This document shows, piece by piece, positions 1 through 63,167 of a stretch of DNA of 64,000 nucleotides. The stretch is from Podarcis muralis (Eukaryota): NCBI RefSeq assembly GCF_964188315.1, contig NC_135667.1, forward strand, positions 22,320,001 through 22,384,000, read 5' to 3'. Under the pieces are notes generated by a model, which saw nothing but the letters and a program-made list of their open reading frames with translations, had not been told where the DNA came from and did not search any database. Each line of letters opens with the position of its first letter. The stretch's first letter is position 1. Made by a program: the position numbers and the translations under genes.

Positions 1-278
1 ACCCTAGGCCAACCCCAACCTCTCTCACCACCAAAGGAACACAAATGAACAACACAAGCAACGCTGACACCAAACTCTACATACATTAAAAATAATAGAA
101 ACACCGCCACCCAACCCCACCCCATCCATCTTCCCTCTCTCCACCCCCTTTCTTTTTTCTATTTTTTCTTCTCCCCCTAATGCCTCAACAAATGAAACAG
201 ATTTGTAAAAATGTTACATGGGGTAAAAAAATTTGAGGCATTACACTTACTTCTTAAAATATATTTTTTTAAAAAATA
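1..278 (+). mobile_element. Probable 3' end of a LINE (family unassigned) in intron 2 of V2R-A
   Basis: Pyrimidine/A-rich UTR-like stretch ending in an A-rich tail. Homology to the paralogous B intron (near 9960, AACTAGGGATTTTT) starts only at about 277, so this is an A-specific insert. Confidence 0.4.
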
Positions 279-609
279 ACTAGGGATTTTTCTTTTAGTA
301 ATTTGAGAACATGCACAGAGATTTCACAACTTACATTTGACATTTATAGGAAGGAATGGCCATATTATTCTCTTTGTATACTAAAAAAAAGATAAAAAGG
401 GAAATGTGATGAAGTACTAAAACTGTATAAGTGCACATAGAACCAGTGCTTTTTTCTGGGGGTACTCAATGTTACATAGGTTAACCTTTCTCTCTCCAAA
501 TGTTAAAAGTGTGGCATTTCCTGTAACAATCTCATGGTGACCTTTTTTTCTTAAAAACAAAACAAAAAAAGCACTGTATAACACACACACAAAGAGAGAC
601 CCAGCATAC

Positions 610-901
610 CTGTGGAATCTTGTAAATATCCACAAGCGTTGCCACTTGCAGTGAAGTTGGGGGGTCCAGTCCCCCAATGACCCCAATCAGGTTCGTTTGG
701 ACATCACAGTTGTAATTTGGAACAAAACCTCCCAAGGTGTATATGAGTAGCATTGTAGCATGGTAGGTCCACTTGTCAGTGAAATAGCTGTCATAGATGT
801 GGAAGCCCAAGGTGACATTGTGTAAGAGCTGAGGGTTTTCATTGATCTCTTTTACTGCAAATGCCAAGGCCAGGATGTGCTGATAATTCTTAGGTACCAC
901 A
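610..901 (-). CDS. V2R-A exon 2 (gene continues off the left edge)
   Basis: 292 bp, ttctag acceptor and GTATGC donor; [20 protein letters not shown]...YKIPQ. Confidence 0.93.
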
Positions 902-1352
902 CTAGAAGGTAAGTTATATTCGGAATCATAAGGAACCATCAAATGTTGTAAAAAGTATTGCAAATTTTATAAAAATAATGTTTTCTGTATATAGTCTATT
1001 AATTATTATTATTCATATTTATATAGAAACTTTCCTGAGGTAACCTTACCTTTAGGTGGCCCATACAAATTTTGCAACAACAACAACCAAACATTACCAT
1101 TGTTCATCATAACATATATTATCCTATTGTTTATCAGTACAGTAGCAATTCAGAGCACGGTGTTCCAAAATAAACGGTATAATTTAAGATCTTCAGGATA
1201 TGATATTTCATACAAAAGTCAGAACACATCTATCTTTTTTTTTAAAAGAGTTGTTTCTCTGGATAGTTTATTACCTTTCAAAACAATTCATGGAATGACA
1301 ATTAAGACTGATAACGAATAATAGTTTGAAAATATTACAATGAAGCCCTTAC

Positions 1353-1570
1353 ACAAGCTCTTCAGGCAAAGGTGATGGGGGTTTTTCAATGAAACTGATA
1401 GCATTGGAGACGATGAAAGTGTGGGAAGCGATAGCTCCAATGATTAGGTCTCCTGACTGGTGGTACTCATGAAGTGGAGGATCTGGATCATCAACCATGC
1501 ACTTAATGATGTGCGCTTTGCTTACCATGTGAGGAAGCAGTACCAGAAGCAAGAGGAACAATAACAGCAT
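1353..1570 (-). CDS. V2R-A exon 1 (signal peptide and N-terminus)
   Basis: ATG at 1570, hydrophobic leader, GDLIIGAI motif, phase-2 GTAAGG donor; 218 bp. Confidence 0.92.
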
Positions 1571-3496
1571 TGTGGGCAGAAATGTTTTCTCTAGATGCAG
1601 ATTTCTTATTTTTATCTCAAAAAGCTCAGAAATCAGACTGACACATTCCTGTCTAATAGTCTTAAATCCTAACCTCAGTCCTAGATTTCTGGAGGGTATA
1701 TTTATACAATTATTCAGAACTATGCTATTTTTTTGCTGGAGTCCACAGCAAACTGCACTGTGGTGTTGGAAAGTATCTCAGTTGATTAGAGTCCTTGGAT
1801 AATTAAAGAGGGAAGCAGTCACCAATTCAACAAGATGCATTCCATGTGGAATTGCTGAAGACTTGTTTTTCATGTCTGATATTGACTTGTTCCTTTTTTC
1901 TATCCCTTAAGGATCTCAAGGGGCACCTGAATTGGCTGTGAGAAACAAGAAATTTGCCCAGAGCCAGGGAAAATGGGGTTGTTTGAGCATGAGATTGTCT
2001 TGCTGCAGAACAGGGGTACCCAAAGTGGTTAGACCCCCCCATCCCATCATAACTGATGACAGACCAGGCAGATGGGATTTTGAGTCCAAAAACCAATTGA
2101 GTACAAGACTTTGTCTATGCCTGTTTTAGGACACAATCAGTGGTTTGAAGTTGGTGCCCACTGGAACTGGTATGGCAGAGAGGCCAGCCATGGATGGAAA
2201 TAGAGCTAATGAAAAGCAGAGCCAAAGTTAGTGGTCAGCACCGTCAATTCTATTTGAATACAGAATCGGGGGAGGGGGGCAACAATAAAGGCAAGAGCTG
2301 AACACGCACAGCTAAATAACATCATATGAACTGCAAATCTGCCAACACAACATTTTCCTCTTTTGCATTGCCCAGGCAGGAATATAATGTGATCCATGAG
2401 AGCAGCAAATAACAAGATTGTACAATAGTGATGGGATTAAAGCAGGCCAAATCTTTATTGACAGCAGCAGGCAGGGTAAGAGTTGGCATGGCATTGTGTC
2501 CCAGAACCAGTCCATCATTCCACAAACCCTATTTGGATAGAGTGGGTCTGCCAAGTTTGGAGTGCCCCAAATCTGTTCCATGACAGTTGGCCAGTGTTGA
2601 GTTTTGCAGTGTTGCTAGCCATGAAAGTAAGTTCTCTCTGGGTGAACAGGAATGACTGAAAATTAGCCAGGGATGATTTCCAGTTTTAAATGAGCACAGA
2701 ATCAAAGTTAGTTTCATTGGACAATATGAAACCCCAAGTCCAACCACATGTAATGCAGGAATCTTTGCCCAATGAAGGGCTTGAACCCACAACCCACCTG
2801 TATTTCAGCAATGGGTCCAATGAATCTACCTTATGAATGAACCTCAGTGATAAAAACTGATACATTCAATATTTAGTAGAGGTATTTTCCTAGGGTTGCC
2901 ATACATCTGGAATTGTCAGGCGGCAGCCAGAAGCTCCTATGGGCAGCTCCCCAGAAATATACAAAGACAAGGACATGTTTCTCACCATCTGCTTTTTATT
3001 CAGTATTTACAGAGAGGGGTTTGGAACGCATTCTCATTATCCCAGGTAAATCTCCACACGCACACACCGTCTCTCCCTCTTCTTCATTCATTATCTCCAT
3101 GGGTGCTGACAAGTGCCCTCTGTGTCTGAGCTCTTCACTCTCCTACTTGCAAGGCTTGCCAGGTTCTGGGAGGGGTGTGTGTCCTAGAATGCTTTATAAA
3201 AGACACTGTTTCCATCAGCTCCCCCCCCCCCCGTGCTTCCTCCTCCTCCACCTCTGCCATTATTTCCCCACTTTTGCCCTCATCTACCTCTGAGGTGTGA
3301 CCTCCCTCAGACCCCTGTTGTAATTCTGAACTGTATTCCTCTTCTCTGGAAGGGTCAGGCTGGCGTGGTTGTCTCCACCATTCCTCCTCTGCCCAGTCCC
3401 TGAGATCATCCTTCTCTCCAGAGCCCTCCTCCTCCTCATTGGTTTTGGTTGGTTGGGGTAGCATTGGCAAAACCTATTTGGTGTTTCACAACTTTC

Positions 3497-4260
3497 TGAC
3501 TAGTTGCAGGACCTTAGCCAGACCTAGCAGAGTTCACGCAGAATCCACGGAAGCAATTGGCGACTTGGCTGCAGACAGGATAGACGAAGCAGGAACCAGG
3601 AACTTGTAGTTAGGTCTTTATTATATACAGTGGACTATTTACAGGAACAGAACACGGATCTTTAGCTAGCTCTCTCATACACGACTCACAACTCCCAACC
3701 TCCAACTCCTACACTGACACACAGAACTCTGAACCTCTGAACTCTGAAATAACACATTCCAGTTAGTAGGCCATTAATTATCACTCATTTGAGAGAGCTT
3801 GACCAATCAGGGAGCTGTCTCCATGTCTCTGTTATCACCAGGCAGACTTACTCCTTCACATGACCTTCTGGCTGTCTGCCAAACCTTAATTGACTCTGTG
3901 TGAGTAGCTGCACGTACACAGTTTCCCAACAGTATGGAACACCCTTTCCAAGTGTGGGGCATGGACATGCTCTGTGTACTCTCATGATCTTTCTTCAAGA
4001 CCATACTCCCTCCATGCAATCAAGTATCACAACTTCTTTCTTTGCATCCTGGAGTCTAGAATTAATTCTGCTTTGTACTCTTTCTCTCCTTCTACCAAGA
4101 CAGGAAGTGCAGGTGCATGTCTAGGTGCCTGATAAGGGTGTGTAGGCACGAGGGCTGATCTGTGGAAGACAGGGTGAATCTTCATAGTTACAGGCAATTG
4201 AAGCCTAAAAGTCATGTGGTTGATCATCATTCCAGCTATGTGCCACTCCTTTAAGGCCAT
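3497..4260 (-). mobile_element. Degenerate Gypsy (chromodomain-type) LTR retrotransposon 3' end: integrase C-terminus, chromodomain and LTR-like tail
   Basis: FRLQLPVTMKIHPVFHRSAL...EGEKEYKAELILDSR...YLIAW (with a stop) matches the chromovirus integrase/chromodomain pattern. LTR limits are approximate. Confidence 0.75.
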
Positions 4261-5384
4261 TCACTTTCAGTTGAACTCTTATATTGCCATTTTAGGTGGT
4301 TTGCACATTACCAACTTGATATACATATATATATATTAGCAACTCATTATAATTATCTATTTATGATAATTGCATTTATTTTCTCTATATGAACTATGTA
4401 TAAATGAATGGTTTGATTCTTCTATTTCTGTATCCTTATGATGCTTTGTGAGAACCTCTGAACTACTATATTCCTCACCTGTCTATATCTAAAGGACTGT
4501 TTGAATAGTTTGAGGGCACAACAAATCAGGTTCTTTAGGCTACATGCTCTACCTTCATTGAGATTCCCCAAATTGTAGGAAATGGTAAGAATAGTTAAGG
4601 ATGTTTCGGAGAACTGATTGTCAAGGAAGATGGACGATAGGTGGGTGAAGCATGATTTCAGAGACTCCAGAGTACTGGGTACACAAGATAATGAAGGAAA
4701 GGAGATAAGGCAGTGAAGCAAGACAGTTTGAACCCCTTGACCTGTGACTTTTCTTGATGCATGCATGAATGCTATGACTTAGTAATGTATTGTGTTTGCA
4801 AACCCCATAAAAGCTTCGTTTAAATGTGCCTTAGGGCAGTTCCCTTAACTGGCAATTCTCTGAACAACTGGTTTTGGGAGGCTCCCCTATTCCAATAGCT
4901 GCTTTAATAAACTGGGTCCCAACTGGATGCTGAGCTTCTATATCTCTCTTGGTTCTGTTTTTCTTTAAGGTGTTATATTCTCATCTGGGCATAAGCCATT
5001 AAGAGCTGGTTTAGGAATAAATACTTATCACAAACTCATCTCATCATAATTCTGACTGACTATTCTTCATGATATATCTGTGATGCATCACCTTCAACTA
5101 TAGCAGGATCTGCTTGTTTCATTTAATATATACTGTAGACACTGTAAATATCAAAAGGTGTCTTTAGATGAGGTTGCCTCTGTTGGCTCCATGTCCAAGG
5201 ATTGGGCATCTGGTAGTTCTAAAAAAATTCTAATTCTTGAATAGGCTACAATGGTATTCAAGAACTCAAACTGAAAAAGTCTCCCTTGTGGAGGTGGTTC
5301 ATTCAACAATTCCCCTGAGATTTCCCCTTCTTTTTCCTCTAAAGGTGCCATAATGTATTATTCTACGTATTTCAAAATGGACAA

Positions 5385-6295
5385 TTACATTCTTTGAGGT
5401 TTTCTCCTTATCAGCTGTTCCTTGTTGTTCAACTCAGGTCTCAAGACAATTATGTAACATTTTGGGGAAAAGATGCAACCCAGCAGTCCAGCACCGGAAG
5501 TTAAAATAGAGAAGATCTCCACTGCCACCATGTATTTTCCCTTTGTGCTCAGGTAGGAAGGAATAAATGATAACCAAACACTGCAAAAGACAAACATGCT
5601 GAAAGTGATGAACTTGGCTTCATTGAAACTCCCAGGTAACTTTCTGGCAAGGAAAGCCACAGTGAAGCTGACAAATGCCAGGAATCCCAGGTAGCCAAGT
5701 ACACAGTAGAACAAAATCACAGACCCCTCATTGCATTCTAACACAATTTCTGAAGTGAAGGAGTGCATGTCAACATCTGGGAATGGGGAAGAAGTTGCAA
5801 GCCAAACAGTACAAATAAGTGCTTGGAGGAGGGAGCAGGAAAGAACAATGCAGCTGGCCAGACTCTTTCCCACCCACTTCCTCATTTTGGATCCAGGTTT
5901 GGTGGCCATGAAAGCCAGAACTACCGTGATGGTTTTTGCCAGCACACAAGCCACAGCCAATGAGAAGATGATGCCAAAGGCACTTTGTCGGAAGAGACAC
6001 ATCACCATATGGGGTTCTCCAATAAACAGAAATGTACAAAGGAAGCAAAGCAGGAGTGAGATGAGGAGAGTATAGGTGAGATCCCGGTTGTTGGCTTTGA
6101 CAATGGGAGTATTGTGGTGTTTTATAAATGTTGCAAGCACTAGAGTTGTGATCATAGAAGATGAAAGAGCTAAAGAGGCTAAACAGAGGCCCAAAGGTTC
6201 TTCATAAGACAAGAAGCTGACATCCTTTGGAATACATTGGTCTTGTCTTTCGTTTGGATATTTTTCATCTGTGCATTTATAACAATCAATTGCAT
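5385..6295 (-). CDS. V2R-B exon 6 (end of cysteine-rich domain and 7TM domain)
   Basis: ttcag|AT acceptor, [31 protein letters not shown], then stop; 911 bp. The six exons total 2637 bp in frame. Confidence 0.95.
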
Positions 6296-7213
6296 CTGAA
6301 AAAAGGATAGAATCTTTGTGAAGCTAGAAATTACAGTCTCATGCAATAAACATATGGCTGTAATCTTTTAATGCCTTTGTAAATCAGACATTTGAGTATT
6401 GTAATGAGCTTAGCCTTGACTTTTGTTGTGGGTTTGGAGTGGAGGGGCATTAAAAGCAAAGGTACTTGTCACCACAGACATAAGATGGTTAGATTCACAG
6501 CACTGACTGCATCAACAGATCTCGTTTCTCCATGCTTCACAGCTTTGGATGTAGCACAAATCCAGCATGTCTTTGTCTCTCAGCTTCTCAGCCTTGTGCC
6601 TGTTTCCAACTCAGCTCTCACACACCACAAGGCTATGATTCTCTATCTACCTGCCAGGTGGGGTGGGGTGGGGGAAGGCCCATCCATTTGCCCAGAAGGA
6701 ACCATCACTTAGTTGAAGCTCTTGTAACCCAGATCATTATTTTAGGATGGGGGTCATAATGCCCAGCCACAGCCATTACCTAATTAAAGAGATCCTTATG
6801 AAGGTGCTTAAGTGACACACTAAGGACATTATCTTACCACTGCCCAGTTAGCAATGGAATCTTTCAATGCACCATCACCTCAAAACCTACAACAATATTC
6901 AAGGCTAAGCTCAAGTATATTACAATGCTTAAATGTCTGATTTAAGAAGACATTAAGACATTACAACCATATGTTTTTGAATATTGCTCTAGAAATTATC
7001 CACTGGTGCACAAATGAAAGCCATGGCAATCTATTTAAGGAAATTAAGCTCAACTCTGTTGACAGAGAGAAATGTCTGGTTTTGAAAGGCATGGAAAAGT
7101 GTTTCTTCAGCTGATATTCTGCTGCTCAAAAAGAAACCCAAGTCTCAATGTCCAATTATTAAAAGGAAGCTGAGCTACATCTGTCTGGTAATGCTGTATA
7201 TAACATTTTTTAC

Positions 7214-7340
7214 CTTTCTGGTCTGAAATCTTCCCTTCTGGGCATGGAATGCAATCATAGCAGCAAAATGCCTCGCCCTCCTTCACTTTCTTGCAAAAAC
7301 CAGGGTAACAACTCTCACTGCACACAGATAGAGGCTGTGC
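7214..7340 (-). CDS. V2R-B exon 5 (cysteine-rich domain)
   Basis: 127 bp, AG/GT; PLSVCSESCYPG...[14 protein letters not shown]. Confidence 0.94.
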
Positions 7341-7489
7341 CTAAAGTGTAAGTGAAAGGGGTTAATGATAATCTTGATGATAAGGATCTTGGAACCCATA
7401 AAATCTAGACTAATTCTCAAAAGTTACACACATTCACAAAATCCAGCATTTAATAGGGACAGTAGAGTATTATCCCAAACTGTCTCTAC

Positions 7490-7717
7490 CTGGTTAAATC
7501 CCCTGTGCCATCTTATAGCATCCTCATTGATTTTGAACGCTTGGTCTGGAGGAGCTTGGGGATCCAGCCTCCCAACTTTCACTCTATGAAAGGATTGGTT
7601 TGCGGCGAAAATCCAGTTCATGATATCAAAACCAGCTGCTAACTCCCCATTCTGGTCAAAGGAAACTTTCCCACCTGCACTGTTGTTAAATGAGACACCT
7701 TTCATAAACCGGTGTAG
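7490..7717 (-). CDS. V2R-B exon 4
   Basis: 228 bp, AG/GT; LHRFMKGVSFNNSAG...WHRGFNQ. Confidence 0.94.
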
Positions 7718-8059
7718 CTGATTTGAAAAGGAAAAAGCAAGAATTGGAAAATTCTGCAACTTGAGCTTGTATGTAAAGTGATAAATGTGAAATAGATTCC
7801 ATTTTTGCAAGGTTTCCCAAATAGAACATTTTATGAATGCTATTTTCATTAAAATTCACATTTTGGGGCTCACATTCCCCCCAATACATGTTCCTTTCTC
7901 GTTCACATTATTCGATTAGAGAACACCATTGTAAAATTAGAATAGTTTCCAATTTCAGAGGAAAGCTGCATTTAAATTTATGTATTAATTTGGGGAGTGT
8001 GTTTGTATACATTAAAATATACACAGAATGACTTTTCCTCTATCTCTAATATTCATTAC

Positions 8060-8920
8060 CTGCCAAAGGCATTGGCCCGGACATTTCTTCATACCTCTGT
8101 TCTTCATTCCACTGTGCTTGAGACTAGATGAGGACATAGCATGTAAAGCATGGGCCATAACATAGACAGCATTATGGATACTGTAGCTATGAGAGGTCAT
8201 GCTCATTTCAAAAAAAGATGGAGGGAGACTCTCCAGCTTTTCCTCCCCAGTGCAAATGTCTCCATCCACCTTGACCGCATCTGTATTTGGGAATACACAG
8301 CCAAAGGCCTGTTGCCAGAAGATCTTGATAAAACCATCTCCTGTGGCGCTGGATGGGTTTCTACTTCTAACAAATTCTTGAAATCCTGGTAGATCATTGG
8401 CATGAATTGTAAATGAGAGAGATCCATGGATTATTTCTGTATCCCAAGTCCTCTGATACACCATTGAAGTGAGGTCAGTCTGGGCTGTTATTATCCACAC
8501 TATACCTTTTGACTTCTTCTTTATATGTTCTTGTCCTGACAGGTATGGAAACCATCTCAACAACGCAATCCCATAGGATTCTCCATATGCCACCACTACA
8601 TGGGCTTTACTGTCTATGATTTTGTCATGTATTTTACCCCCCTTGTTAATCATGTCATGAATATCAGTGACAATGGTAAATGTTAGGCTTCTTTCTATGA
8701 AGGCAAAGCAGATACCACTCCGAGAAAAAGGCGGAACCACACTTTGCACAAATCTTTCTCCATTGTCATTATCCATAGTTAGGAGTCCAATCCAAGTCCA
8801 CCTGAAATGCAGAAGCAAAGAAAGAATCCCTGCAAACTGACTGTTTTCTCTGGGCACCATCTGGTAGAATGGGATGCCTGGTGTTTTGTCATTCATCACT
8901 GGAGCAGGGCCATAGATGAG
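8060..8920 (-). CDS. V2R-B exon 3 (Venus flytrap domain)
   Basis: 861 bp open frame, AG/GT; FYQMVP, HFRWTWIG, HNAVYVMAHALH. Confidence 0.95.
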
Positions 8921-8983
8921 CTAAAGAAAATAGTGGAGAGGAAAGAATGGGATTGTATTCTTATGAATTTGGAGGAGGAAGTA

Positions 8984-9539
8984 CGTTGTATGCTTACATA
9001 CATAAGACCCTTAGAAGGTTCTTAACGGCTAGAACCAGCAAATGTTTAAATCTAAGGAAGGATTCAAATGGTTAAATAACCAGACAGGCTTCTTGATAAC
9101 AGCCCTCAAGTATGGGTCGTTAACGTAACAAAGGAAGTGTCTCTGTGTATGATAACAAATGAGTGTGTGCCCTTCTCTCAACTCCTTGGCAGTTAGTTAG
9201 AAATGATCAGGACAAAGCTGAGTTCTGTTTGTGTGCAAGCTAGAAGCTGGAAATAGCAGGCTAGGAAGCCAGAGAGAGATAGCCATGCTTCATTTCTTCT
9301 TGAATCAGAGGCTGTGGCTATTGGAGAAGTAAGACTGCAGCCATGGGAGAAGCAAGAGCCTTTTGGTGTGTTAATGCTGTGAACCTCTCCATCATAGGCT
9401 CAGGGTGTATATATGCATAAGCAAACCATGTATCATAAAGACTATGCAGTCTCCACTGTACCGCATTTCAAGGGAAACACAAACCCTGGGTAAGTGCCTG
9501 GAACTTCAAATTGCTCTGAGATTGGGATGGTAGGCAACA
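8984..9539. mobile_element. Probable solo LTR in B intron 2
   Basis: (C)GTTG...CAACA termini. The sequence interrupts intron homology with gene G upstream of exon 3. TSD is unclear. Confidence 0.5.
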
Positions 9540-9639
9540 GTATGTTATGAAGTCCTAGTCAGAGTAGACCCATTGAAATGAATGAATCTCAATAATGCAT
9601 ATGCATTAACTTCAATGGTTTAATATGAGTAGGACCAGT

Positions 9640-9819
9640 CAGTGGCGTAGGGTGGGGGGTGCAGGGGGGGCCGGCCGCACCGGGCGCAACATCTGGGGTT
9701 AGGGCAAATCCATGGGTTAGGGGGCGCAAATCCACAGGTTAGGGGGCTCAAATCCACGGGTTAGGGGGCGCAAATTACTTGCCTTGCCCCGGGTGCTGAC
9801 AACCCACGCTACGCCACTG
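9640..9819. mobile_element. hAT-type MITE with internal 21-bp tandem repeats
   Basis: TIRs CAGTGGCGTAG/CTACGCCACTG; perfect 8-bp TSD GGACCAGT at 9632-9639 and 9820-9827. Confidence 0.88.
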
Positions 9820-10277
9820 GGACCAGTGTTGAATAGACAGAATGTTCGAAGAAAAATACACCCACATTTTGTCAATAATATTTTCAGTAAACTTGAAATG
9901 TTAGTGGCTTTTCCTTTCCTGTGGCTGAGCCAGTCAACTTCTCAGTAGCATAAATAACAACTAGGGATTTTTTTATTATTATTAATTTAAGAACATGCAC
10001 AGAGGTTTATTTCACAGATGAGATTTGACATTTATAGGAAGGAATGGCCATGAATTTATATTATTCTCTGTGTATACCAAAAAAAGAGGAAATGTGACAA
10101 AGTACTAAAATTGTAAAAGTACACATAGAACCAGTGCTTTTCCTGGGGGTACTCAATGGTACATAGGTAAATCTTTCTCTCTCCAAATGTTAACATTGTG
10201 GCTTTTTCTTTAACAACCTCATGGTGAGTAGTGGCACCTTTTTTTCCTCAAAAAAGAAAAAAAGCACCGTATAGAAC

Positions 10278-10280
<3 letters not shown>

Positions 10281-10310
<30 letters not shown>
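10281..10310. repeat. (CA)n microsatellite
   Basis: Direct reading. Confidence 0.9.
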
Positions 10311-10313
<3 letters not shown>

Positions 10314-10324
10314 ACCCATCATAC

Positions 10325-10616
10325 CTGTGGAATCTTGTAAATATCCACCAGTGTTGCCACTTGAAGTGAGGTTGGGGGGTCCAGTCCCCCAATGACCCCA
10401 ATCAGGTTAGTTTGGATATCACAGGTGTAATTTGGAACAAAACCTCCCAGGGTGTATATGAGTAGCATTGTAGCATGGTAGGTCCACTTGTCAGTGAAAT
10501 AGCTGTCATAGATGTGGAAGCCCAAAGTGACATTGTGTAAGAGCTGAGGGTTTTCATTGATCTCTTTTACTGCAAATGCCAAGGCCAGGATGTGCTGATA
10601 ATTCTTAGGTACTGCA
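10325..10616 (-). CDS. V2R-B exon 2
   Basis: 292 bp, AG/GT, near-identical to A exon 2. Confidence 0.95.
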
Positions 10617-11057
10617 CTAGAAGGTAAGTTGTATTCTGAATCATAAGGAACAATTACATGTTGTAAAAAGTATTGCAAATGTTATAAAAAAAATGTATTC
10701 TATATCTCATTATTCATATTCATCTAACAATTTTCTTGAGGTAACCTTACCTTTAGGTGGCCCATACAAATTTTAAATCAACAACAACCAAATGTTACCA
10801 TTGTTCATCAAAACATATGCTTTCCTATTCTTTATCAGTAAAGTAGCAATTCAGAGCAGGGTGTTCCAAAATGGTATAATTTAAGATCTTCAGGATATGA
10901 TATTTGATACAAATGACTGGGCATAGCTTTCCCTCTTTTTTTAAATAACAGTTGTTTCTTTGGATAGATTATTGCCTTTCAAACAAATACTTAATGGAAT
11001 GAAAATTAAGACTAATAACTAATATTAGTTTACAAAATATTATAGTTAAGCCCTTAC

Positions 11058-11275
11058 GCAAGCTCTTCAGGCAAAGGTGATGGGGGTTTTTCAATGAAGC
11101 TGATTGCATTGGAGATGATGAAAGTGTGGGAAGCGATAGCTCCAATGATTAGGTCTCCTGACTGGTGGTACTCATGAAGCGGAGGATCTGGATCATCAAC
11201 CATGCACTTAATGATGTGCGCTTTGCTTACCATTTGAGGAAGCAGTGCCAGAAGCAAGAGGAACAATAACATCAT
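11058..11275 (-). CDS. V2R-B exon 1
   Basis: ATG at 11275, signal peptide, GTAAGG donor; 218 bp. Confidence 0.93.
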
Positions 11276-11911
11276 TGTGGGCAGAAATGTTTTCTCTAGA
11301 TGCAGATTTCTTATTTTTATCTCTTAAAGCTCAGGACTAAAATATACAGTATAGGGTCAGAAATCAGACTGACACAATATTGTCTAATAGTCTTAATTCC
11401 TAAACCAGTCCTAGATTTCTGGAGGGTATATTTATACAATTATTCAGAACTGTGATATTAGTTTTGCTGGAGTACACAGTAAACTGCACTGTAGTGCTGA
11501 AAAGTAGCTTGTTAATTAGAGTACTTTGGATAATTAAAAAGGAAGAAGTCACCAATTCAACAAGGAGCATTCCATGTGGAATTACCGAGGACATGTTTTT
11601 CATGTCTGAAATTAACTTTTTACTTTTTACTTTTTCCAATCCATTAAGGAGCTCAAGGGGCAACTGAATTGGCTGTGAGAAACAAGAAATTTGTTCAGAG
11701 CCAGGGAAAAAGGGGGTGTTTGAGCATGAGATTGTCTTGCTGCAGAACAGGGGTACCCAAAGTGAATCCTCCAAAAGTTGTTAGACCCCCCCCCAACCCC
11801 ATCGTAACTGATGACAGACCAGGCAGATGGGATTTTGAGTCCAAAAACCTACTGAGTACAAGACTTTGTCTATGCCTGTTTTAGGACACAATCAGTGGTT
11901 TGAAGTGGTTC

Positions 11912-12500
11912 GTGCTGCCGAACACCCCCCCCCCCCCAATTTGGTGCTGCTCCATTGGCCTTGTTTTGGATCGGGTCGCCTGCTTTGGAGCAGGGGCTGG
12001 GTAGGAATTTTTCCATTTGGCAGCTTAGCTTCGTCCACTTGGTTTTCGCCTACCCCCTTAGCAATCATCACAACTTTGTAAAGTTTGGTGGTTAGGCATT
12101 GGTTTATAGAAATGTGTGGGAGGGGAGGTGTGGCCATTACCTGCCCCTCCAGAATTAGGGCATTCCATTAAAGTAATTTGTGGGTCCTGGATCTCGTCTG
12201 AAGTCTGCTTGAGGGGCTAGGGCCATTCCAAGACCACAGGAACACTGGGGTGAGCTTCAATCAATCTTCACCGATGTTGTTACCCTGGTTTGGTGCTTAC
12301 CCTTTCAGACTGCCAGCCAGAGAGGCAGGAGGCAATTATAGTCCCTGGCCAATGCCTAGGCCAATACCGCTCAATTTGTTTTGTAATCAATAAAGTTGTG
12401 GCCTAAATTTTGCCCAAAAACTTAAACTAAAATTATGTGTCTGTTTGCATTTATTTACTGGGAATGGGTTTGGGGGCCTCGGGGCACAAATCACAGTTAC
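11912..12500 (+). mobile_element. Non-coding structured repeat, copy 1 (DIRS/Ngaro-like terminal remnant, tentative)
   Basis: Absent from the A paralog. Aligns with 49680-50250 and shares CACAACTTTG and AATAAAGTTGTGGCC. The family assignment is inference. Confidence 0.55.
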
Positions 12501-21183: not shown

Positions 21184-21784
21184 NNNNNNNNNNNNNNNNN
21201 NNNNNNNNNNNNNNNNNNNNNNNNNNNNNNNNNNNNNNNNNNNNNNNNNNNNNNNNNNNNNNNNNNNNNNNNNNNNNNNNNNNNNNNNNNNNNNNNNNNN
21301 NNNNNNNNNNNNNNNNNNNNNNNNNNNNNNNNNNNNNNNNNNNNNNNNNNNNNNNNNNNNNNNNNNNNNNNNNNNNNNNNNNNNNNNNNNNNNNNNNNNN
21401 NNNNNNNNNNNNNNNNNNNNNNNNNNNNNNNNNNNNNNNNNNNNNNNNNNNNNNNNNNNNNNNNNNNNNNNNNNNNNNNNNNNNNNNNNNNNNNNNNNNN
21501 NNNNNNNNNNNNNNNNNNNNNNNNNNNNNNNNNNNNNNNNNNNNNNNNNNNNNNNNNNNNNNNNNNNNNNNNNNNNNNNNNNNNNNNNNNNNNNNNNNNN
21601 NNNNNNNNNNNNNNNNNNNNNNNNNNNNNNNNNNNNNNNNNNNNNNNNNNNNNNNNNNNNNNNNNNNNNNNNNNNNNNNNNNNNNNNNNNNNNNNNNNNN
21701 NNNNNNNNNNNNNNNNNNNNNNNNNNNNNNNNNNNNNNNNNNNNNNNNNNNNNNNNNNNNNNNNNNNNNNNNNNNNNNNNNNNN
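21184..21784. other. Assembly gap (601 N)
   Basis: Run of N, preceded by a (TCTA)n-like repeat. Confidence 0.99.
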
Positions 21785-45251: not shown

Positions 45252-45324
45252 AGCTCAATGTGGGGCTCAAACCCATGACCCTGAGATTAATAGTCTCATG
45301 CTCTACCGACTGAGCCATCTCCAC
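45252..45324 (-). pseudogene. tRNA-Lys(CTT)-derived pseudogene or SINE head
   Basis: Reverse complement matches vertebrate tRNA-Lys-CTT, but the anticodon reads ATT, the B box is mutated and the acceptor stem is broken. Confidence 0.75.
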
Positions 45325-48546: not shown

Positions 48547-49501
48547 GTAAGAGTTTAACTTATTCCTTTTTTAAAATTTTGAATTTGTTTTTTCTTCTTC
48601 TTTTCTGAAGTGAAGGGTACTAAGAGAGCACTGAAGGGTAATAAGAACATGGGAATGTTGTAAATAAAATAATTATTTTCATATGGATTTGACTCTTCAT
48701 TTTCTCTGCCAAATTCTTTGATTTGCAAATGTAAAAGTACTGGAAGAAGAATCTCTTGTTGCTGTTTATGCTAACAAGACCCTAATGCCCCCCCCCCCAT
48801 TAAAATAAGTGGCTAAGTTTCATTTGAAATATTTGTTCTTACTGGGAGCCAGAGAACACCTCTGACTTTCTGACTCCCTTATCTAGCATGTTATAGAAAG
48901 TTTATTCATGGTTGCAACCTTTCATCTTCTGCCTTCTGCTTTGTCTTCTCTGCTGTACATCTCTTTCAGCATATATGCAATATGTCATCACCATTCTCAT
49001 TCTTAACAATAATTCAGACTATCCTTTTATTTTCTGAGAGAAAATAATGAGCACTCCAAGGCATTATAAATATGTTTATGCATCCTAATCTTCATTGTTT
49101 GATGTTTTGAGGCATATCCCAATTCAGTCCTCCTAATCTTATCAAAATTATTTTTGCTCTTCTTCAATATCCTAGAGGAAAAGTTCATGTAGGCAATTAC
49201 ATGGCATCATCTTTTACTGCATCAGATAGCAGGTCCAATTATGCCAGCTTTTCTACTTTTGGTAGCTGCTCTCCCTGAACTGTGACACATAACTTTCCTG
49301 GTCCTGTTATTCACAAGGGGTCTGTAACTGAAGATGCTGTGAATTGAATCAATGACCATCTGTAGACAGTATATAAACCCTGCCTTAAGTTACAGTTCTT
49401 CTGCAGTCCTTCTCTTGCAATTTCATACCCCAACTTTTGGACGTGATTGATGGCAGTCTTGGGGATAATGAATAAAACTCCAGTTTAATCAATTTCAGCA
49501 A

Positions 49502-50251
49502 ACAGGATTATCTTCAAGGATGGTTTTGGTTGTGGGCAGGCCCACTACAGTCCCGTCCCCCCCGGCGTGGGGGGAGTTATGGCCTTTACGCCAGGGTGGC
49601 ACCATGATCACCCCAGGCTTCTTTTGGCCAATCGTGATTGAGTGAGGTGATCGTGGGGGGCATAAAAGCAGCAGTGCTTCACACTGCCAAACACCCACCC
49701 ACCCTCCCTTTTGTTTTAGCTGCCCTCTGGCCTTTCTTTGGACTTTGGTTGGTTGCCTGTCTTGGGACGGGGGTGGGTAGGAATTTTTCGATTTGGCGGA
49801 TTGGAGCTGGCCACTTGGTTTTTGCCTACTTCTCAGCAATTGTCACAACTTTGTAAGGTTTGGTGATTAGGCATTGGCTTATTGATGGGGGGGGGGAGGT
49901 CAGCCATTGGCTGCCACTCCATGTTCAAGGGTATTCCATTAAAGGAATCTGGGGCCTGGATCCTGTCTAAAGTCCGCTTGAGGGGCTAGGGCCATGCCAG
50001 GCCTCTGGGAACACCGAGGAGAGCTGCAGGCGGGTTCCCCCAATGTGGCTCCCTCATTGGTGCTTTACCCTTCCTGATTCCCTGCAAGGTGGGCAGGGGT
50101 CAGAGTTTATTGCAAAGGCCTAAGCCAAAACTGCTCACATTTGCTGTAATCAATAAAGTTGTGGCCTAAATTTTGCCCATTAACCTTAAACCTAAATCTG
50201 TCTCTGTGTGAATTTATTTCCTCTGGGGGGCTGGCTTGGGGGCCTTGACAC
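49502..50251 (+). mobile_element. Non-coding structured repeat, copy 2 (DIRS/Ngaro-like or LTR-like), in G intron 1
   Basis: Absent at the paralogous H site (TTCAGCAATTCCTGG); GCAA duplicated at 49498-49501 and 50252-50255. Confidence 0.7.
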
Positions 50252-50548
50252 GCAATTCCTGGAGTTACTGCTATGTCCTGGAACTTTTAATTAATCTTTC
50301 CCAAGAAGATGAAAAACAATACCCCACCTTCTGAAATGGTATTCACACCTCCCACCGTCAAACTAATGGTGCAAGTGAAAAAAGGACGTAACATTTTCAA
50401 AGTTCCATGGAGATGGAAAAGTTTAATAATATTTTTAAACTGATAGTAGTTACTATGCTTCATTTTGATATAGTATACAATACTTTTCCAACATTTGCAA
50501 TATCAGTGTGAAGTTTCCTTATGATTCAGAATACAACTTGCTTTCTAG

Positions 50549-50840
50549 TTCAATACCTAAGAATTATCAGCACATCCTGGCCTTGGCTTTTGCAGTAAAA
50601 GAGATCAATGAAAACTTTCACCTCTTGCCCAATATCACCTTGGGTTTCCACATCTATGATAACTATTATACTGATAAGTGGACCTACCATGCTACAATGC
50701 TGCTTATATACACCCTGGGAAGATTTGTTCCAAATTACCAATGTGATGTCCAAACAAACCTGATTGGAGTCATTGGGGGACTGGACCCCCCAACCTCACT
50801 TCAAGTGGCAAGACTGGTGGACATTTTCAAAATTCCACAG
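50549..50840 (+). CDS. V2R-G exon 2
   Basis: 292 bp, AG/GT. Confidence 0.94.
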
Positions 50841-50862
50841 GTATGCAATGTGTGTATGTTTT

Positions 50863-51713
50863 TGCGTGGACAGGCGGAGTCCCCAGATCCCCCGCGGTCC
50901 CCCCGTCATGTGGAATAACGACTCGAGACAACGTGCTATGGGATTAAATTGGCCACAACTTTATTAAATTTCAAATGTGGGTAGACCTTGGCTCAGGCAT
51001 TGGGCGTTCTCCCTCCCCAGTCCCCAGCCAGGGACCTAGGGAGCATCAGGGTTATCCAGTGTGTGTGTGGGGGGGGGGGATGGGCCGGCTCTGGAGAACA
51101 TATGTTCAAGCAGAGATAGCCGCCGCCGCAGGGGAGAGCAATGACAACCTTTCGGCGCATGGCTAAAGCCTCCCGTCAGAAACCCCTTTAACGGGGAACC
51201 CTGGTATCGCCGCCGCAAAGAGGAAGATGGACTAAAGGATTCCGCCCAAGGCCTGATACCGCCAAAGTTGTGACGTTTTGCTACGGGAAAGGCGAAACCT
51301 GCCAATGCAGGGTAATTCCTTTCCGGCCCTTTAACAGCGACCTTAACGTAGCAGCGCCCGCATACCTGTGAAGAAAAGTTAACCTGCGAAACCTGTGAAG
51401 AAAAGTTAATCTGCAAAATAAGACATTAACTGAGGGTGGGTAGGGTGGGAGAAGCTCTGGAGCCAAGTGAGGATTCCCAGGTAAGATCCTCCCTCTATTG
51501 TGTGGGCAGGTAGTCCCTCCCCTACCTAGCCTGGTCTCCTTGGCAACGCTTCCCCCAGGTGGGATTGGGCAAATGACTGAGATAGGCGGAGACCTCCAGG
51601 TATCCCACCTGAGGGAAGGCAAGGCCAAGCCTATGCTGTTGGAGCCGCTCCAGATCTAGGGGCTGCACGCGTCCACGCAAAGGGCGCCCCCTGTTTTAAG
51701 CGGGGAGCAGTCA
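50863..51713 (-). mobile_element. Non-coding structured repeat, copy 3, in G intron 2 (CpG-rich, so probably young)
   Basis: Absent at the paralogous H site (near 62835-62850). On the minus strand it starts TGACTG and ends CCACGCA, and carries the family motifs. Confidence 0.7.
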
Positions 51714-52042
51714 TTGTGTGTTGTTCTATGTATAATTATAGTGCTTTACTACTTTTAAACATTTCCTTTTAAAATGTTATGTTTTTGGCATAGTCAGTGA
51801 ATAACATACATGCATGGCCATCACTTTGTGTATATGTCAAGCCTTGATTGTTAAATAAAGCCTGTGTGGGTCATTCTTAAATTAGAATCAAGAAGTGTAA
51901 CAACCTAAGCACTTCACCTCTTCCTTCTACTTTGAAATAAGCCAATTCTTTTAAGAAAAAAAAATGTTTTGTGACAATACTTCAGGAATATAAACATTAA
52001 GGGTCAGCTAAGCAGAACTCTGCCATATCACATACTGGGTTT

Positions 52043-57829: not shown

Positions 57830-60689
57830 CTGCTGCTGTTGTTTTGTTGTTTAGTCATTTATTCGTGTCCAACTCTTCGTGACCCCATGAACCAGAGCAC
57901 CCTTGGCACTCCTGTCTTCCACTGCCTCCGGCAGTTTGGTTAAACTCATGTTGGTAGCTTTGAGAACACTTTCCAACCATCTCATCCTCTGTTGTCCCCT
58001 TCTCCTTGTGCCCTCAATCTTTCCCAACATCAGCGTCTTTTCCAGGGAGTCTTCTCTTCTCATGAGGTGGCCAAAGTATTGGAGCCTCAGCCTTAGGATC
58101 TGTCCTTCCAGTGAGCGCTCAGGGCTGATTTCCTTCAGAATGGATAGGTTTGATCTTCTTGCAGTCCATGGGACTCTCAAGAGTCTCCTCCAGCACCATA
58201 ATTCCAAAGCATAAATTCTTCGGTGATCAGCCTTCTTTATGGTCCTGCTCTCATTTCCATACATCACTACTTGGAAAACCATAGCTTTAACTGTATGGAC
58301 CTTTGTCGGCAAGGTGATGTCTCCGCTTTTTAAGATGCTGTCTAGGTTTGTCACTGCTTTTCTCTCAAGAAACAGGTGTCTTTTAATTTTGTGACTGCTA
58401 TCACCATCTGCAGTGATCATGGAGCCAAAGAAAGTAAAATCTCATCAAAAGGTTCTTTAATTCCTCCTCACTTTCTGCCACCAAGGTTGTGTCATCTGCA
58501 TATCTGAGGTTGTTGATATTTCTTCTGGCAATCTTAATTCCGGCTTTGAATTCATCTAGTCCAGCCTTTCGCATGATGAATTCTGCATCTAAGTTAAATA
58601 AGCAGGGAGACAATATACAGCCTTGCCATACTCCTTTCCCAATTTTGAACCAATCAGTTATTCCATATCCAGTTCTAACTGTAGCTTCTTGTCCCACAGA
58701 GATTTCTCAGGAGACAGATGAGGTGATCAGGCACTCCCAATTCTTTAAGAACTTGCCATAGTTTGCTGTGGTCGACACAGTCAAAGGCTTTTGCGTAGTC
58801 AATGAAGCAGAAGTAGATGCTTTTCTGGAACTCTCTAGCTTTCTCCATAATCCAGCACATGTTTGCAATTTGGTCTCTGGTTCCTCTGCCCCTTCGAAAT
58901 CCAGCTTGTGCTTCTTGGAGTTCTCGGTCCACATACTGCTTGAGCCTTCCTTGTAGAATTTTAAGCATAACCTTGCTAGCATGTGAAATGAGCACAATTG
59001 TGCAGTAGTTGGAGCATTCTTTGGCACTGCCATTACCTCCATCTTATTCCCTGGCTAAAAAAGCATACAAACAGGCCCAGAAATCGGCCAAACGGGAGTG
59101 GCACTTAAATCGTTGGCAGACTATAATTTCTGCCTCAAAATCTCATAACTCCCGGAAATTTTGGTCCTTAATAAAGGGTAGAAACACGAAATATCCCTTA
59201 ATGATGATCCCAGCCCCTACATGGGAGCAGTTCCTGAGAAAATATTTCTCAGTGGCAAAAGCTCCGGCCACTCATTGGAGACCTTCTAATCCCCTTCCCG
59301 TCTGGCCTAATACCAACCCTGCTGAAATCATTTTGCTTGCCTTCTCTCCCCCGCTGTTTGCAAGGCCTCATTGGACAGCCACTTTGCTTTCTTGCATTTC
59401 CTTTTCATTGGGATGGTTTTCATTGCTGCCTCCTTTATCATATTACAAGCCTCCATCCATAGTTCTTCAGGCACTCTGTCCACCAAATCTAAATCCTTAA
59501 ACCTGTTCCTCACTTCCACTGTGTATTCATAAGGGATTTGATTTAGATTGTGTCTTACTGGCCAGTGGTTTTTCCTAGTTTCTTCAGTTTAAGCTTGAAT
59601 TTTGCTATAAGAAGCTGATGATCTGAGCCACAGTCAGTTCCAGGTCTTGTTTTTGCTGACTGTATAGAGCTTCTCCATCTTTGGCTGCAGAGAATATAAT
59701 CAATCTGATTTTCATGCTGCCCATCTGGTGATGTCCATGTGTAGAGTCGTCTCTTGTGTTGTTGGAAAAGAGTGTGATGACCAGCTTGTTCTCTTGACAG
59801 AACTCTATTAGCCTTTGCCCTGCTTTGTTTTGAACTCCAAGGCCAAACTTGCCAGTTGTTCCTTTTATCTCTTGACTTCCTTTAGCATTCCAATCCTCTA
59901 TAATGAGAAGAACATCCTTTGTTGGTGTCATTTCTAGAAGGTGTTGTAAGTCTTCATAGAATTGGTCAATTTCAGTTTCTACAGCACCGGTAGTTGGTGC
60001 ATAAACTTGGATTACTGTGATGTTAAAAGGTTTGCCTTGGATTCGTATCGAGATCATTCTGCCATTTTTAAGATTGTATCCCAGTACAGTTTTTGCCACT
60101 CTTTTGTTGACTATGAGGGCCACTCCATTTCTTTTACAGGATTCTTGCCCACAGTAGTAGATATGATGGTCATTCAAACTGAATTCGCCCATTCCTGTCC
60201 ATTTTAGTCCACTGATGCCGAGGATATCAATATTTATTCTTGCCATCTCATTTTTGACCACATCCAGCTTAACAAGGTTCATGGTTCTTACATTCCAGAT
60301 TCCTATGTAATATTTTTCTTTACAGCATTGGACTTTCCTTTCACTTCCAGGCATATCCGCAACTGAGTGACCTTTCAGTTTGGCCCAGCTGCTTCATCAG
60401 TTCTGAATCTACTTGTACTTGTCCTCTGCTCTTCCTCAGTAGCATGTTGGATGCCTTCCGACCTGAGGGGCTCATCTTCCAGCGTCATAATTTTTATATG
60501 CCTGTTGTCTTTGTCCATGGAGTTTTCATGGCAGGGATACTGGAGTGGCTTGCCATTTCTTGCTCCAGGTGGATCACGTTTAGTCAAAACTCTCCACTAT
60601 GACCTGTCCATCTTGGGTGGCCTTGCACAGCATAGCTCATAGCTTCTCTGAGTTATTCAAGCCCCTTTGCCATGACATGGCAGTGATCC
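57830..60689 (-). mobile_element. Near-full-length, frameshifted BovB (RTE-clade LINE)
   Basis: APE motifs (IGIWNVRTM, ITVIQVYAPT) and RT motifs (FIDYAKAFDCVDH, LRYADDTTL); (CAR)n tail; 15-bp TSD AGAAGCTGTCTGCTG at 57815-57829 and 60690-60704; empty site in the G copy near 47703-47717. Confidence 0.95.
59032..59330 (+). mobile_element. Fragment of a different LINE (EN-RT linker region, RTE-X-like, tentative) inverted inside BovB
   Basis: Open frame AKKAYKQAQKSAKREW...NSRKFWSLI...WEQFLRKYF...LPVWP...EI that is unlike BovB, on the opposite strand. Confidence 0.6.
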
Positions 60690-61541: not shown

Positions 61542-62518
61542 GTAAGAGTTTAACTTATTCCTTTTTTTAAAAAAAGGATATCTTACTATGAATTTGCTTT
61601 TTCTTCTTCTTTTCTGAAGTGAATGGTATTTGTTCTTACTGGGAGCCAGAGAACACCTCTGACTTTCTGACTCCCTTATCTAGCATGTTATAGAAAGTTT
61701 ATTCATGGTTGCTACCTTTCATCTTCTGCCTTCAACTTTGTCATCTCTGCTGTACATCTCTTTCAGCATATATACAACATGTCATCATTCTCATTCTTAA
61801 CAATATCTGAGAAAAAATAACGAGCACTCCAAGGCATTATGAATCCATATATGCATCTTATCCCCCACCCCTTCATTGTTTTATGTTTTAAGGCATATCT
61901 AATTCAGTCCTCCGAATCTTATCAAAATTATTTTTGCTCCTCTTTAATATCCTAGAGGAAAAGTTGATCTAAGCAATTACATGGCATCTTCTTTTACTGC
62001 ATCAGATAGCAGGTCCAATTATGCCAGTTTTTCTACTTTTGGTAGCTGCTCTCCCTGAACTGTGACAGATGTCTTTCCTGGTCCTGTTATTCACAAGGGG
62101 TCTGCAACTGAAGATGCTGTGAATTGAATCAATGACGATCTGTAGACAGTATATAAACCCTGCCTTAAGTTACAGTTTTTCTGCATTCCTTCTCCTGCAA
62201 TTTTATACCCCAGCTTTGGGACATGATTGGTGGCAGTCTTGGGGATAAGGAATAAAACTCCAGTTTCAGCAATTCCTGGAGTTACTGCTATGTCTTGGAA
62301 CTTTTTATTAAGATGAAAAACAGTACCCCACCTTCTCAAATGGTATTCCCACCTCCCTGTCAAACTAATGGTGCAAGTGAAAAAAGGATGTAGCATTTTA
62401 AAAGTTCCAGGGAGATGGAATAGTTTAATAATATTTTTAAAGCGATACAATACTTTTCTAACAATTGCAATATCAGTGTGAAGTTTCCTTATGATTCAGA
62501 ATACAACTTACCTTCTAG

Positions 62519-62810: not shown

Positions 62811-63167
62811 GTATGCCATATGTTTCTATCAATGTGTGTATGTTTGTGTGTGTTGTTCTATGTATAATTATAGTTCTTTACTACTTTTAAACATTTCCTT
62901 TTAAAATGTTTTGTTTTTGGCATAGTCAGTGAATAACATACACGCATGGCCATCACTCTGTGTAAATGTCAAGCCTTGATTGTTAAATAAAGCCTCTGTG
63001 GGTCATTCTTAAATTAGAATCAAAAAGCGTAACAGCCTAAGCACTTCACCTTTTCCTCCTACTTTGAAATAAGCCAATACTTTTAAGAAAAAAAAGTTTT
63101 GTGGCAATACTTTAGGAATATAAACATAAGGGTCAGCTAAGCAGAACTCTGACATATTACATATATT

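Follow-up and report, generated by a model that had tools for sequence, protein, structure and literature searches.

Solo terminal-repeat units of Ngaro-like retrotransposons and their sense-strand fold in a lizard vomeronasal receptor array

Of all orders of retroelements, the tyrosine-recombinase retrotransposons are the least understood; their primer, the ends of their RNA and the way in which their termini are rebuilt are unresolved even for DIRS-1, and Ngaro replication has so far been described only as a paper model. As relayed in later accounts, Ngaro elements of the DIRS order carry gag-like, RT/RH and tyrosine recombinase ORFs in the arrangement A1-[ORFs]-B1-A2-B2 (Goodwin & Poulter 2004, via PMC9210276, PMC4157794 and PMC8547959), with B1A2B2 described as having no spacer; they have no methyltransferase domain, which sets them apart from DIRS1-like and PAT-like elements, and amphibian Ngaro elements have an extra ORF for an SGNH hydrolase (PMC9210276). 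Solo AB Ngaro repeats are scattered in the genome of Cafeteria burkhardae, where they are attributed to recombination between the 5' and 3' repeats in the manner of solo LTRs (PMC8547959). DIRS1-like elements have inverted terminal repeats, an internal complementary region and a 3-bp circular junction (PMC3266345, PMC7192593), and in the model proposed for the order a short junction sequence recombines with an identical target (PMC3266345).

Here we describe three non-coding inserts in a 64,000-nucleotide stretch of the Podarcis muralis genome (the window), for which an original prediction had proposed a shared, nested RNA architecture overlapping the AATAAA signal. The locus led us to young, intact copies of the parent element and to an exact map of the repeat boundaries relative to the promoter, the RNA helices and the poly(A) site. 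It also accounts for a repeat family of lacertid genomes, non-coding and 750-860 bp long, whose thousands of members could be mistaken for solo LTRs. Coordinates of the inserts and their parts are given in Table 1.

Table 1. Window inserts, related copies and their structural parts (window positions unless a locus is named).
Feature	Position	Strand	Remarks
Copy 1	11910-12489	+	5'-truncated solo unit; limits by homology to L008-L012
Copy 1 parts	A last ~15 nt; X ~11925-12085; B ~12086-12486; CAA 12487-12489	+	
Copy 1 hairpin H0	11974-11997	+	RNAalifold, MFE fold
Copy 1 stem (i) = H1	11999-12005/12049-12055	+	inner hairpin in 43-nt loop; RNAalifold, MFE fold
Copy 1 H2 5' strand (UCACAACUUUGU)	12067-12079	+	3' end of X; invariant in all units
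Copy 1 H3	12090-12104/12347-12362	+	closes B domain (span 12090-12362)
Copy 1 H4, AUUAAA loop	12162-12177	+	within the H3-closed B domain
Copy 1 poly(A) module	12389-12447	+	AAUAAA 12389-12394; H2 3' strand 12390-12401; GU-rich 12436-12447
Copy 1 predicted CA cleavage site	~20 nt past AAUAAA	+	
Copy 2	49502-50251 (with 3' core to 50255)	+	complete solo A-X-B
Copy 2 parts	A 49502-49693; X 49694-49860; B 49861-50251	+	
Copy 2 TATA-like CATAAAAG	49661-49668	+	in A
Copy 2 GCAA, both junctions	49498-49501, 50252-50255	+	
Copy 2 H1	49775-49781/49824-49830	+	
Copy 2 H2	49842-49854/50153-50165	+	
Copy 2 H3	49867-49878/50112-50123	+	
Copy 2 H4	49933-49948	+	
Copy 3	50865-51713	-	complete solo A-X-B; divergent, very high-copy subfamily
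Copy 3 parts	A 51713-51446; X 51445-~51262; B ~51261-50865	-	
Copy 3 CAA (TTG on + strand), both junctions	51714-51716, 50862-50864	-	
Copy 3 H1	51318-51324/51286-51292	-	
Copy 3 H2	51263-51274/50952-50963	-	
Copy 3 H3	51243-51256/50993-51006	-	
Copy 3 H4	51183-51196	-	
Copy 4	L004:3761-5129		full unit, GCAA flanks; inside hAT-like DUF659 ORF (L004:5088-5726 also concerned)
B-only/3'-terminal fragments	L010:15246-15647; L001:~6330-6457; L009:1962-2001		

Inserts in a receptor gene array and their parent elements

In the window, vomeronasal type-2 receptor (V2R) genes form a tandem and inverted array whose units measure about 10-11 kb, and the most similar proteins come from lacertid lizards. 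This repetition of the host DNA lets paralogous V2R units serve as empty sites; the site of copy 2 is empty in a window paralogue at 62269-62274 and that of copy 3 at 62823-62847, which fixes the edges of both inserts and identifies them as true insertions. Copy 1 is 5'-truncated and lies at a breakpoint of a V2R segmental duplication, where the alignment with the paralogue ends at 11909. The first ~12 kb of the array (1-11909) are inverted relative to the remainder (12500-64000), with inverted repeats of up to 915 nt at 90% identity, and the point at which the array switches orientation is the position of the truncated copy 1.

Copies 2 and 3 belong to different subfamilies and are independent of one another; they lie in opposite orientation about 600 bp apart, bracketing a V2R exon (ORF 50508-50918), and a 96%-identical paralogue contains neither of them. 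Outside this pair the density of units is about one per 100-165 kb, and the pair may reflect either a local hotspot or chance. Other V2R loci, spanning about 165 kb, contain one full copy (copy 4, in locus L004) and one fragment (in L001). Further features of the window are a LINE fragment at 57851-60393 (minus strand), with an endonuclease-like ORF (weak Exo_endo_phos matches) and adjoining RT-like ORFs; a tRNA-like Rfam match (36.6 bits; 45260-45317, minus strand) inside a repeat found in several V2R units, which is probably the head of a tRNA-derived SINE; and a run of 601 N at 21184-21784, either an assembly gap or a masked stretch.

Copies 1 and 2 are 76% identical, and copy 3 goes undetected by blastn when the other copies are used for comparison. 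The original prediction held that copy 3, although barely alignable, keeps the geometry of the other two, and this is what we observe: the complementary segments have the same order and spacing in all three inserts, and every segment that had been named lies where it was said to lie, including stem (i) (Table 1), the outer helix CACAACTTT/AAAGTTGTG (12069/12392, 49844/50155 and 51264/50954) and the inner helix (12093/12349, 49867/50118 and 51243-51256/50993-51006). Helix spacings in the inserts, copy 3 included, are 18-25, 249-260 and 33-35 nt, and the distance from CACAACTTTG to AATAAAG is 320, 308 and 307 nt in copies 1, 2 and 3 respectively. Within the window there are exactly three occurrences of the 15-mer AATAAAGTTGTGGCC.

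We examined contig depth across the copy 2/3 region (49400-51800) using contigs of two DNA runs from the same species. Summed depth is 15,000-100,000 across the whole of copy 3, and the unique flanks have 20-60. Two blocks of copy 2, and no others, reach the level of copy 3, one at 49805-49885 (the 3' strand of stem (i), CACAACTTTG and TTAGGCATTGG) and one at 50129-50209 (the AATAAAGTTGTGGCC region); the first 190 nt at the 5' end of copy 2 are low-copy. This profile indicates a family of thousands of members in which the blocks that form the helices are the conserved core. RNA-seq reads are few and fall on both strands; neither their starts nor their ends cluster, and some of them extend past the predicted cleavage site.

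Related loci were recovered from the P. muralis assembly GCA_964188315.1, and a P. raffonei V2R locus (L007) was found to contain a gag-like ORF, an RVT_1 ORF and a Phage_integrase ORF. The RT of L007 retrieved annotated P. muralis homologues, and the five of these loci that were analysed (L008-L012) are without exception full-length retrotransposons of 7.3-8.5 kb, arranged as A1-INT-B1-A2-X-B2 with B1 abutting A2 directly. Within each of the five elements A1 is 100% identical to A2 (209-227 nt) and B1 to B2 (366-427 nt), and X is a single-copy segment of 162-178 nt between A2 and B2 (e.g. L011:13639-13816). The ORFs of INT encode a gag-like protein with a CCCH finger, an RT, a tyrosine recombinase with a SAM-like domain, and a GDSL/SGNH hydrolase; Pfam scans of L011 and L010 place RVT_1 (E 1.7e-13) ahead of Phage_integrase with its SAM-like domain (E 1.6e-6 to 2e-4), the RT-then-recombinase order is the same in L007, and Pfam scans of the four ORFs gave no methyltransferase domain. 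The A2-X-B2 segments of L008-L012 align with copies 1-4 and share all motifs and helices with them. We conclude that the inserts are solo terminal-repeat A-X-B units of Ngaro-like tyrosine-recombinase retrotransposons, and the DIRS/Ngaro assignment of the original prediction is thus borne out by full-length copies with RT, tyrosine recombinase and split direct repeats that match the insert unit. A solo A-X-B unit is the expected remnant of recombination between A1 and A2.

No full-length copy of the copy 3 subfamily is present among the recovered loci. Scans of viral and metagenome contigs with patterns of the conserved motifs returned no matches, nor did two protein searches in which spurious ORFs of the inserts were used to harvest copies. 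The insertion of copy 4 keeps the reading frame of the hAT-like DUF659 ORF, with an inferred empty site of CTTGCAATACTT, and copy 4 is itself split at 4395-4975 by a 580-nt SINE with a (GTT)n/(AAC)n tail. Of the B-only or 3'-terminal fragments, the one in L010 starts exactly at the 5' boundary of B about 900 nt downstream of a complete element, and the one in L001 retains AATAAAGTTGCGGCC without the inner-helix strand.

The B|A junction reads ...ACG-CAA-..., and the flanks of the inserted elements share 2-4 nt with it: GCAA for copies 2 and 4, CAA for copy 3 and L012, CAAA for L009, AAA for L011 and AA for L010, with no shared core at the flanks of L008. Integration therefore involves a short core common to the B|A junction and the target, without an ordinary target duplication, and the pattern across the inserts and the L elements matches the recombination model for the DIRS order. 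Copy 3 also has a 29-nt subterminal inverted repeat, 79% complementary (TTTGCGTGGAC...; 50861-50889 and 51653-51681), with its first arm at the 3' end of the copy and its second set back 33 nt from the 5' end, and it carries a 33-nt extension. In a circular junction the CAA core would have an arm on either side, an arrangement suggestive of a possible binding site for the recombinase.

Two other routes of origin were considered and set aside. The inverted repeat and extension of copy 3 raised the possibility of a non-autonomous DIRS1-like element, but the parents have direct repeats, and neither an internal complementary region nor an internal copy of the ends was found in the inserts. Truncated copies, together with the (CAA)n-type SINE tail in copy 4, suggested LINE/SINE-type mobilisation through a CAA tail, but complete units have a fixed 5' end and their parents carry a recombinase. 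When the start of B (TGGCGG...) was compared with tRNAs as a candidate primer-binding site, there was no convincing complement to a tRNA 3' end.

A conserved sense-strand fold between the A|X boundary and the poly(A) site

The repeat boundaries fall at defined points of the promoter, the helices and the poly(A) site. We infer that A is the promoter part and that it ends at or just after the start of transcription, as A ends 32-47 nt past a TATA-like box, a spacing that predicts a start site 3-16 nt inside A. X begins with a C-rich run followed by H0 and by stem (i), here called H1, with its inner hairpin; it also contains CACAACTT, and UCACAACUU lies at its extreme end. The 5' boundary of B falls precisely at the 5' strand of inner helix H3; B continues through H4 (UUCC-GUUAAA-GGAA) and other hairpins, and then reaches the H3 3' strand CCAAUGCCUAAGCC, such that the domain closed by the 13-14 bp of H3 runs from the first nucleotides of B to a point about 33 nt ahead of AAUAAA. 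The 10-bp outer helix H2 pairs the end of X with B sequence that begins inside AAUAAA, at its last two A's. Because X is single and B is duplicated in the full-length element, H2 requires a strand that is present once, while its partner strand exists twice.

Nearly all units have UGUA at -7, AAUAAA, CA at +25/26 and a GU-rich block at +40 to +56, from which B is predicted to hold a canonical poly(A) site. The H4 loop, (G/A)UUAAA, is nearly invariant (e.g. 49938-49943, and 51187-51192 on the minus strand), and its stem varies from UUCC/GGAA to CCCC/GGGG; the self-complementary UUAA within it could conceivably let B copies, or RNAs, contact each other loop to loop.

We aligned nine units, the three from the window and six from the related loci, with copy 4 excluded from the RNAalifold alignment; the SINE bases within copy 4 were skipped for folding and alignment only. 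RNAalifold recovers H0, H1, H2, H3 and H4 together with minor helices, and compensatory changes are present among its pairs 26-50 (H0) and 51-114 (H1). For this structure, which was predicted from the same alignment of nine related units of one species (L009-L011 being close), 20 of the 64 pairs are doubly changed with pairing kept, compared with 7.1±1.8 in 1000 within-column shuffles, and the covariation score is 0.274 compared with 0.143±0.013; none of the 1000 shuffles reached either value. One pair in H3 occurs as five pair types (CG, UA, UG, GC and AU). Canonical cells make up 95% of the total, compared with 31-53% when the 3' partner is slid by 1-3 columns, and column identity is 85-100% in the helix strands versus 42-44% in the interiors.

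The nine-unit alignment contains G·U in 53 cells and A·C in one, an imbalance which indicates that the fold belongs to the sense strand, and the sense alignment folds with -56.5 kcal/mol compared with -38.9 for the antisense. Single-sequence predictions are less uniform: stem (i) is present in the MFE folds of all three copies, the outer helix in those of copies 2 and 3, and the inner helix in those of copies 1 and 3, and the folding z-scores are weak (-1.4 to -2.1 for copies 1-3). From these observations we conclude that a sense-strand fold is conserved between the A|X boundary and the poly(A) site, and it is likely that selection acts on this fold, most simply as RNA. This agrees with the original view of the fold as selected, for which the pairing controls, the covariation, the G·U to A·C ratio and the sense versus antisense folding all speak.

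Two of the original statements hold in part. Change of the stem sequences with pairing kept is seen in stem (i), in the inner helix and in further helices that had not been listed, whereas the outer helix H2 is invariant in 10 of 10 units; its pairing is thus unproven by covariation and is a matter of conservation rather than of co-variation, and conservation of the H2 3' strand may simply reflect its being part of the poly(A) site. The proposed overlap of the outer helix with AATAAA extends in all units to the last two A's, which are paired, but a longer overlap is lost in L009-L012. No insert matched an Rfam family at the gathering score, and at E<=5 there were only chance-level matches far below it.

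Proposed read-through of the internal poly(A) signal and competing readings

The arrangement of the full-length elements places constraints on their RNA. Since A (upstream of the predicted start site), X and the B tail (downstream of the predicted cleavage site) are again 100% identical in new copies, they must be present in the template RNA, and since all of them lie downstream of the B1 AAUAAA, we infer that this RNA has to read through B1 and to end in B2. The map thereby makes read-through of the internal poly(A) signal obligatory, and it supplies a candidate RNA element for this step. Upstream of the two poly(A) sites the sequence is the same over at least 366 nt, and X is their sole nearby difference. 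It is reasonable to suppose that a helix beside AAUAAA could gate polyadenylation, and the element architecture, as we model it, would require such gating.

In the mechanism that we propose, the template RNA would read through the B1 poly(A) signal and end in B2. The X strand of H2 would fold back on the sequence adjacent to AAUAAA, with a preference for the upstream B1 copy, and pairing between X and B1 would block cleavage at B1 and leave B2 free; in solo units and in short X-B transcripts the X strand would pair with the only B available. Constrained partition functions of short X-B and B1-A2-X-B2 RNAs give pair probabilities that bear on this. H2 has a probability of 0.61-0.91 in the short X-B RNA, and in the read-through RNA the X-B1 pairing has 0.57-0.96 in four of the five elements and the X-B2 pairing 1e-6 to 0.2; L012 shows neither pairing, with the proviso that equilibrium folding of 1.2-kb RNAs is unreliable. 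We favour the masking model because of these probabilities and because X is the sole nearby difference between the two sites. Duplex energies between INT and the AAUAAA region were unremarkable relative to other regions and gave no conserved alternative partner inside INT. X is transcribed about 470 nt after B1, so that masking would have to outrun cleavage in a kinetic race. That X acts as a single-copy RNA mask, with its 10-nt end strand reaching ~470 nt back onto B1 such that B2 is used, is put forward as a tentative possibility. If true, it would constitute a cis-acting poly(A) switch made of one strand and two identical partners, and it would explain why Ngaro elements have split rather than simple terminal repeats.

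Taken as one explanation, Ngaro-like identity, a conserved sense-strand fold and masking of the B1 poly(A) signal by X is the account that we think probable. The same identity and the same fold could instead serve reverse transcription or packaging rather than the choice of poly(A) site, and this we regard as unlikely, though far from negligible. The CCCH gag-like protein might recognise H0, H1 and H2 as a packaging signal, and X, being single-copy and downstream of B1, would then mark read-through (genomic) RNA only; alternatively, the structure beside the internal A end might guide minus-strand transfer and formation of the circular junction. The primer of DIRS-1 is unknown and intramolecular annealing of single-stranded cDNA has been proposed for it (PMC7192593), and the H4 loop GUUAAA includes the self-complementary UUAA, both of which are in keeping with such roles. 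However, neither a primer-binding nor a dimerisation site could be shown, and the 53:1 ratio of G·U to A·C fits sense RNA and not minus-strand cDNA.

This ratio also bears on a reading at the level of DNA, in which the arms are protein sites (CCAAT boxes in both orientations, or accessory sites for the recombinase) with no RNA role and the covariation is concerted change. The inner-helix arms are indeed CCAATGCCTAA and its exact complement, and the unit contains several more ATTGG/CCAAT motifs, but tolerance of G·U with avoidance of A·C is an asymmetry unexpected of duplex DNA sites, five separate helices keep their pairing, the stems of H1 and H4 have changed without involving a CCAAT motif, and the sense alignment folds far better than the antisense; we consider this reading improbable. 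Quite improbable, too, is recent common descent, by which a few palindromic motifs would simply have been inherited and the structure would be unselected. The units come from a single species, some are close relatives, H2 is invariant and the z-scores are weak, as common descent would have it; yet copy 3 is beyond blastn detection and keeps all helices with compensatory changes, interiors have drifted to 42-44% column identity with pairing still at 95%, and no shuffle in 1000 reached the observed covariation. We find it scarcely credible that the units are solo LTRs of an endogenous retrovirus or integrase-type element, or that the fold is a self-cleaving ribozyme or an IRES. The layout is LTR-like in having a promoter, a transcribed region and a poly(A) site, but the units lack TG...CA ends (copy 2 starts with ACAGG and copy 4 with ATCCG) and a 4-6 bp duplication (the flanking repeat is 2-4 nt and CAA-like), and the parents have a tyrosine recombinase and split repeats rather than LTR pairs; an LTR origin was rejected for these reasons. 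The ribozyme and IRES-like module raised by the original prediction fared no better, as no Rfam ribozyme, IRES or other family was matched at E up to 5 and no ORF follows the unit, and nothing points to an IRES because the unit is downstream of all ORFs or stands alone.

Comparison with known systems

Like the Ngaro elements described previously, the lizard elements have gag-like, RT and recombinase ORFs in that order, lack a methyltransferase, carry an SGNH ORF and identical split direct repeats, and integrate with no ordinary target-site duplication. They differ in the addition of the single-copy X (162-178 nt), which is absent from those parts of the published Ngaro descriptions that were compared, in the length of B (366-427 nt versus 152 bp in Xenopus DIRS-53_XT), and in the conserved RNA fold that spans X and B. 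The kind of element is therefore already known; what has no counterpart in Rfam or in the portions of published descriptions compared is X, the conserved fold and the exact way in which the repeat boundaries coincide with RNA helices. The solo AB repeats of Cafeteria are likewise isolated terminal-repeat units scattered in a genome, but the lizard solo units are A-X-B, are present in thousands of copies and contain a structured transcribed region.

With DIRS1-like elements the lizard elements share a junction trinucleotide that recombines with an identical target, and internal copies of the ends that restore termini missing from the RNA. In contrast to DIRS1-like elements, their repeats are direct, there is no internal complementary region and no methyltransferase, and the core is CAA-like rather than NTT.

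The HIV-1 poly(A) hairpin occludes AAUAAA, and the Rex-responsive element of HTLV-1 folds between AAUAAA and the cleavage site. Retroviral R regions and the lizard elements have in common a repeated poly(A) signal of which one copy has to be ignored and the other used, and an RNA helix that involves the signal. The lizard helix, however, is long-range (~300 nt) with a single-copy partner strand and is not a local hairpin, and it belongs to a recombinase retrotransposon with permuted repeats that has no sequence or Rfam relation to these viruses. The putative masking of B1 thus resembles the HIV-1 poly(A) hairpin by analogy, in its logic and not through descent or membership.
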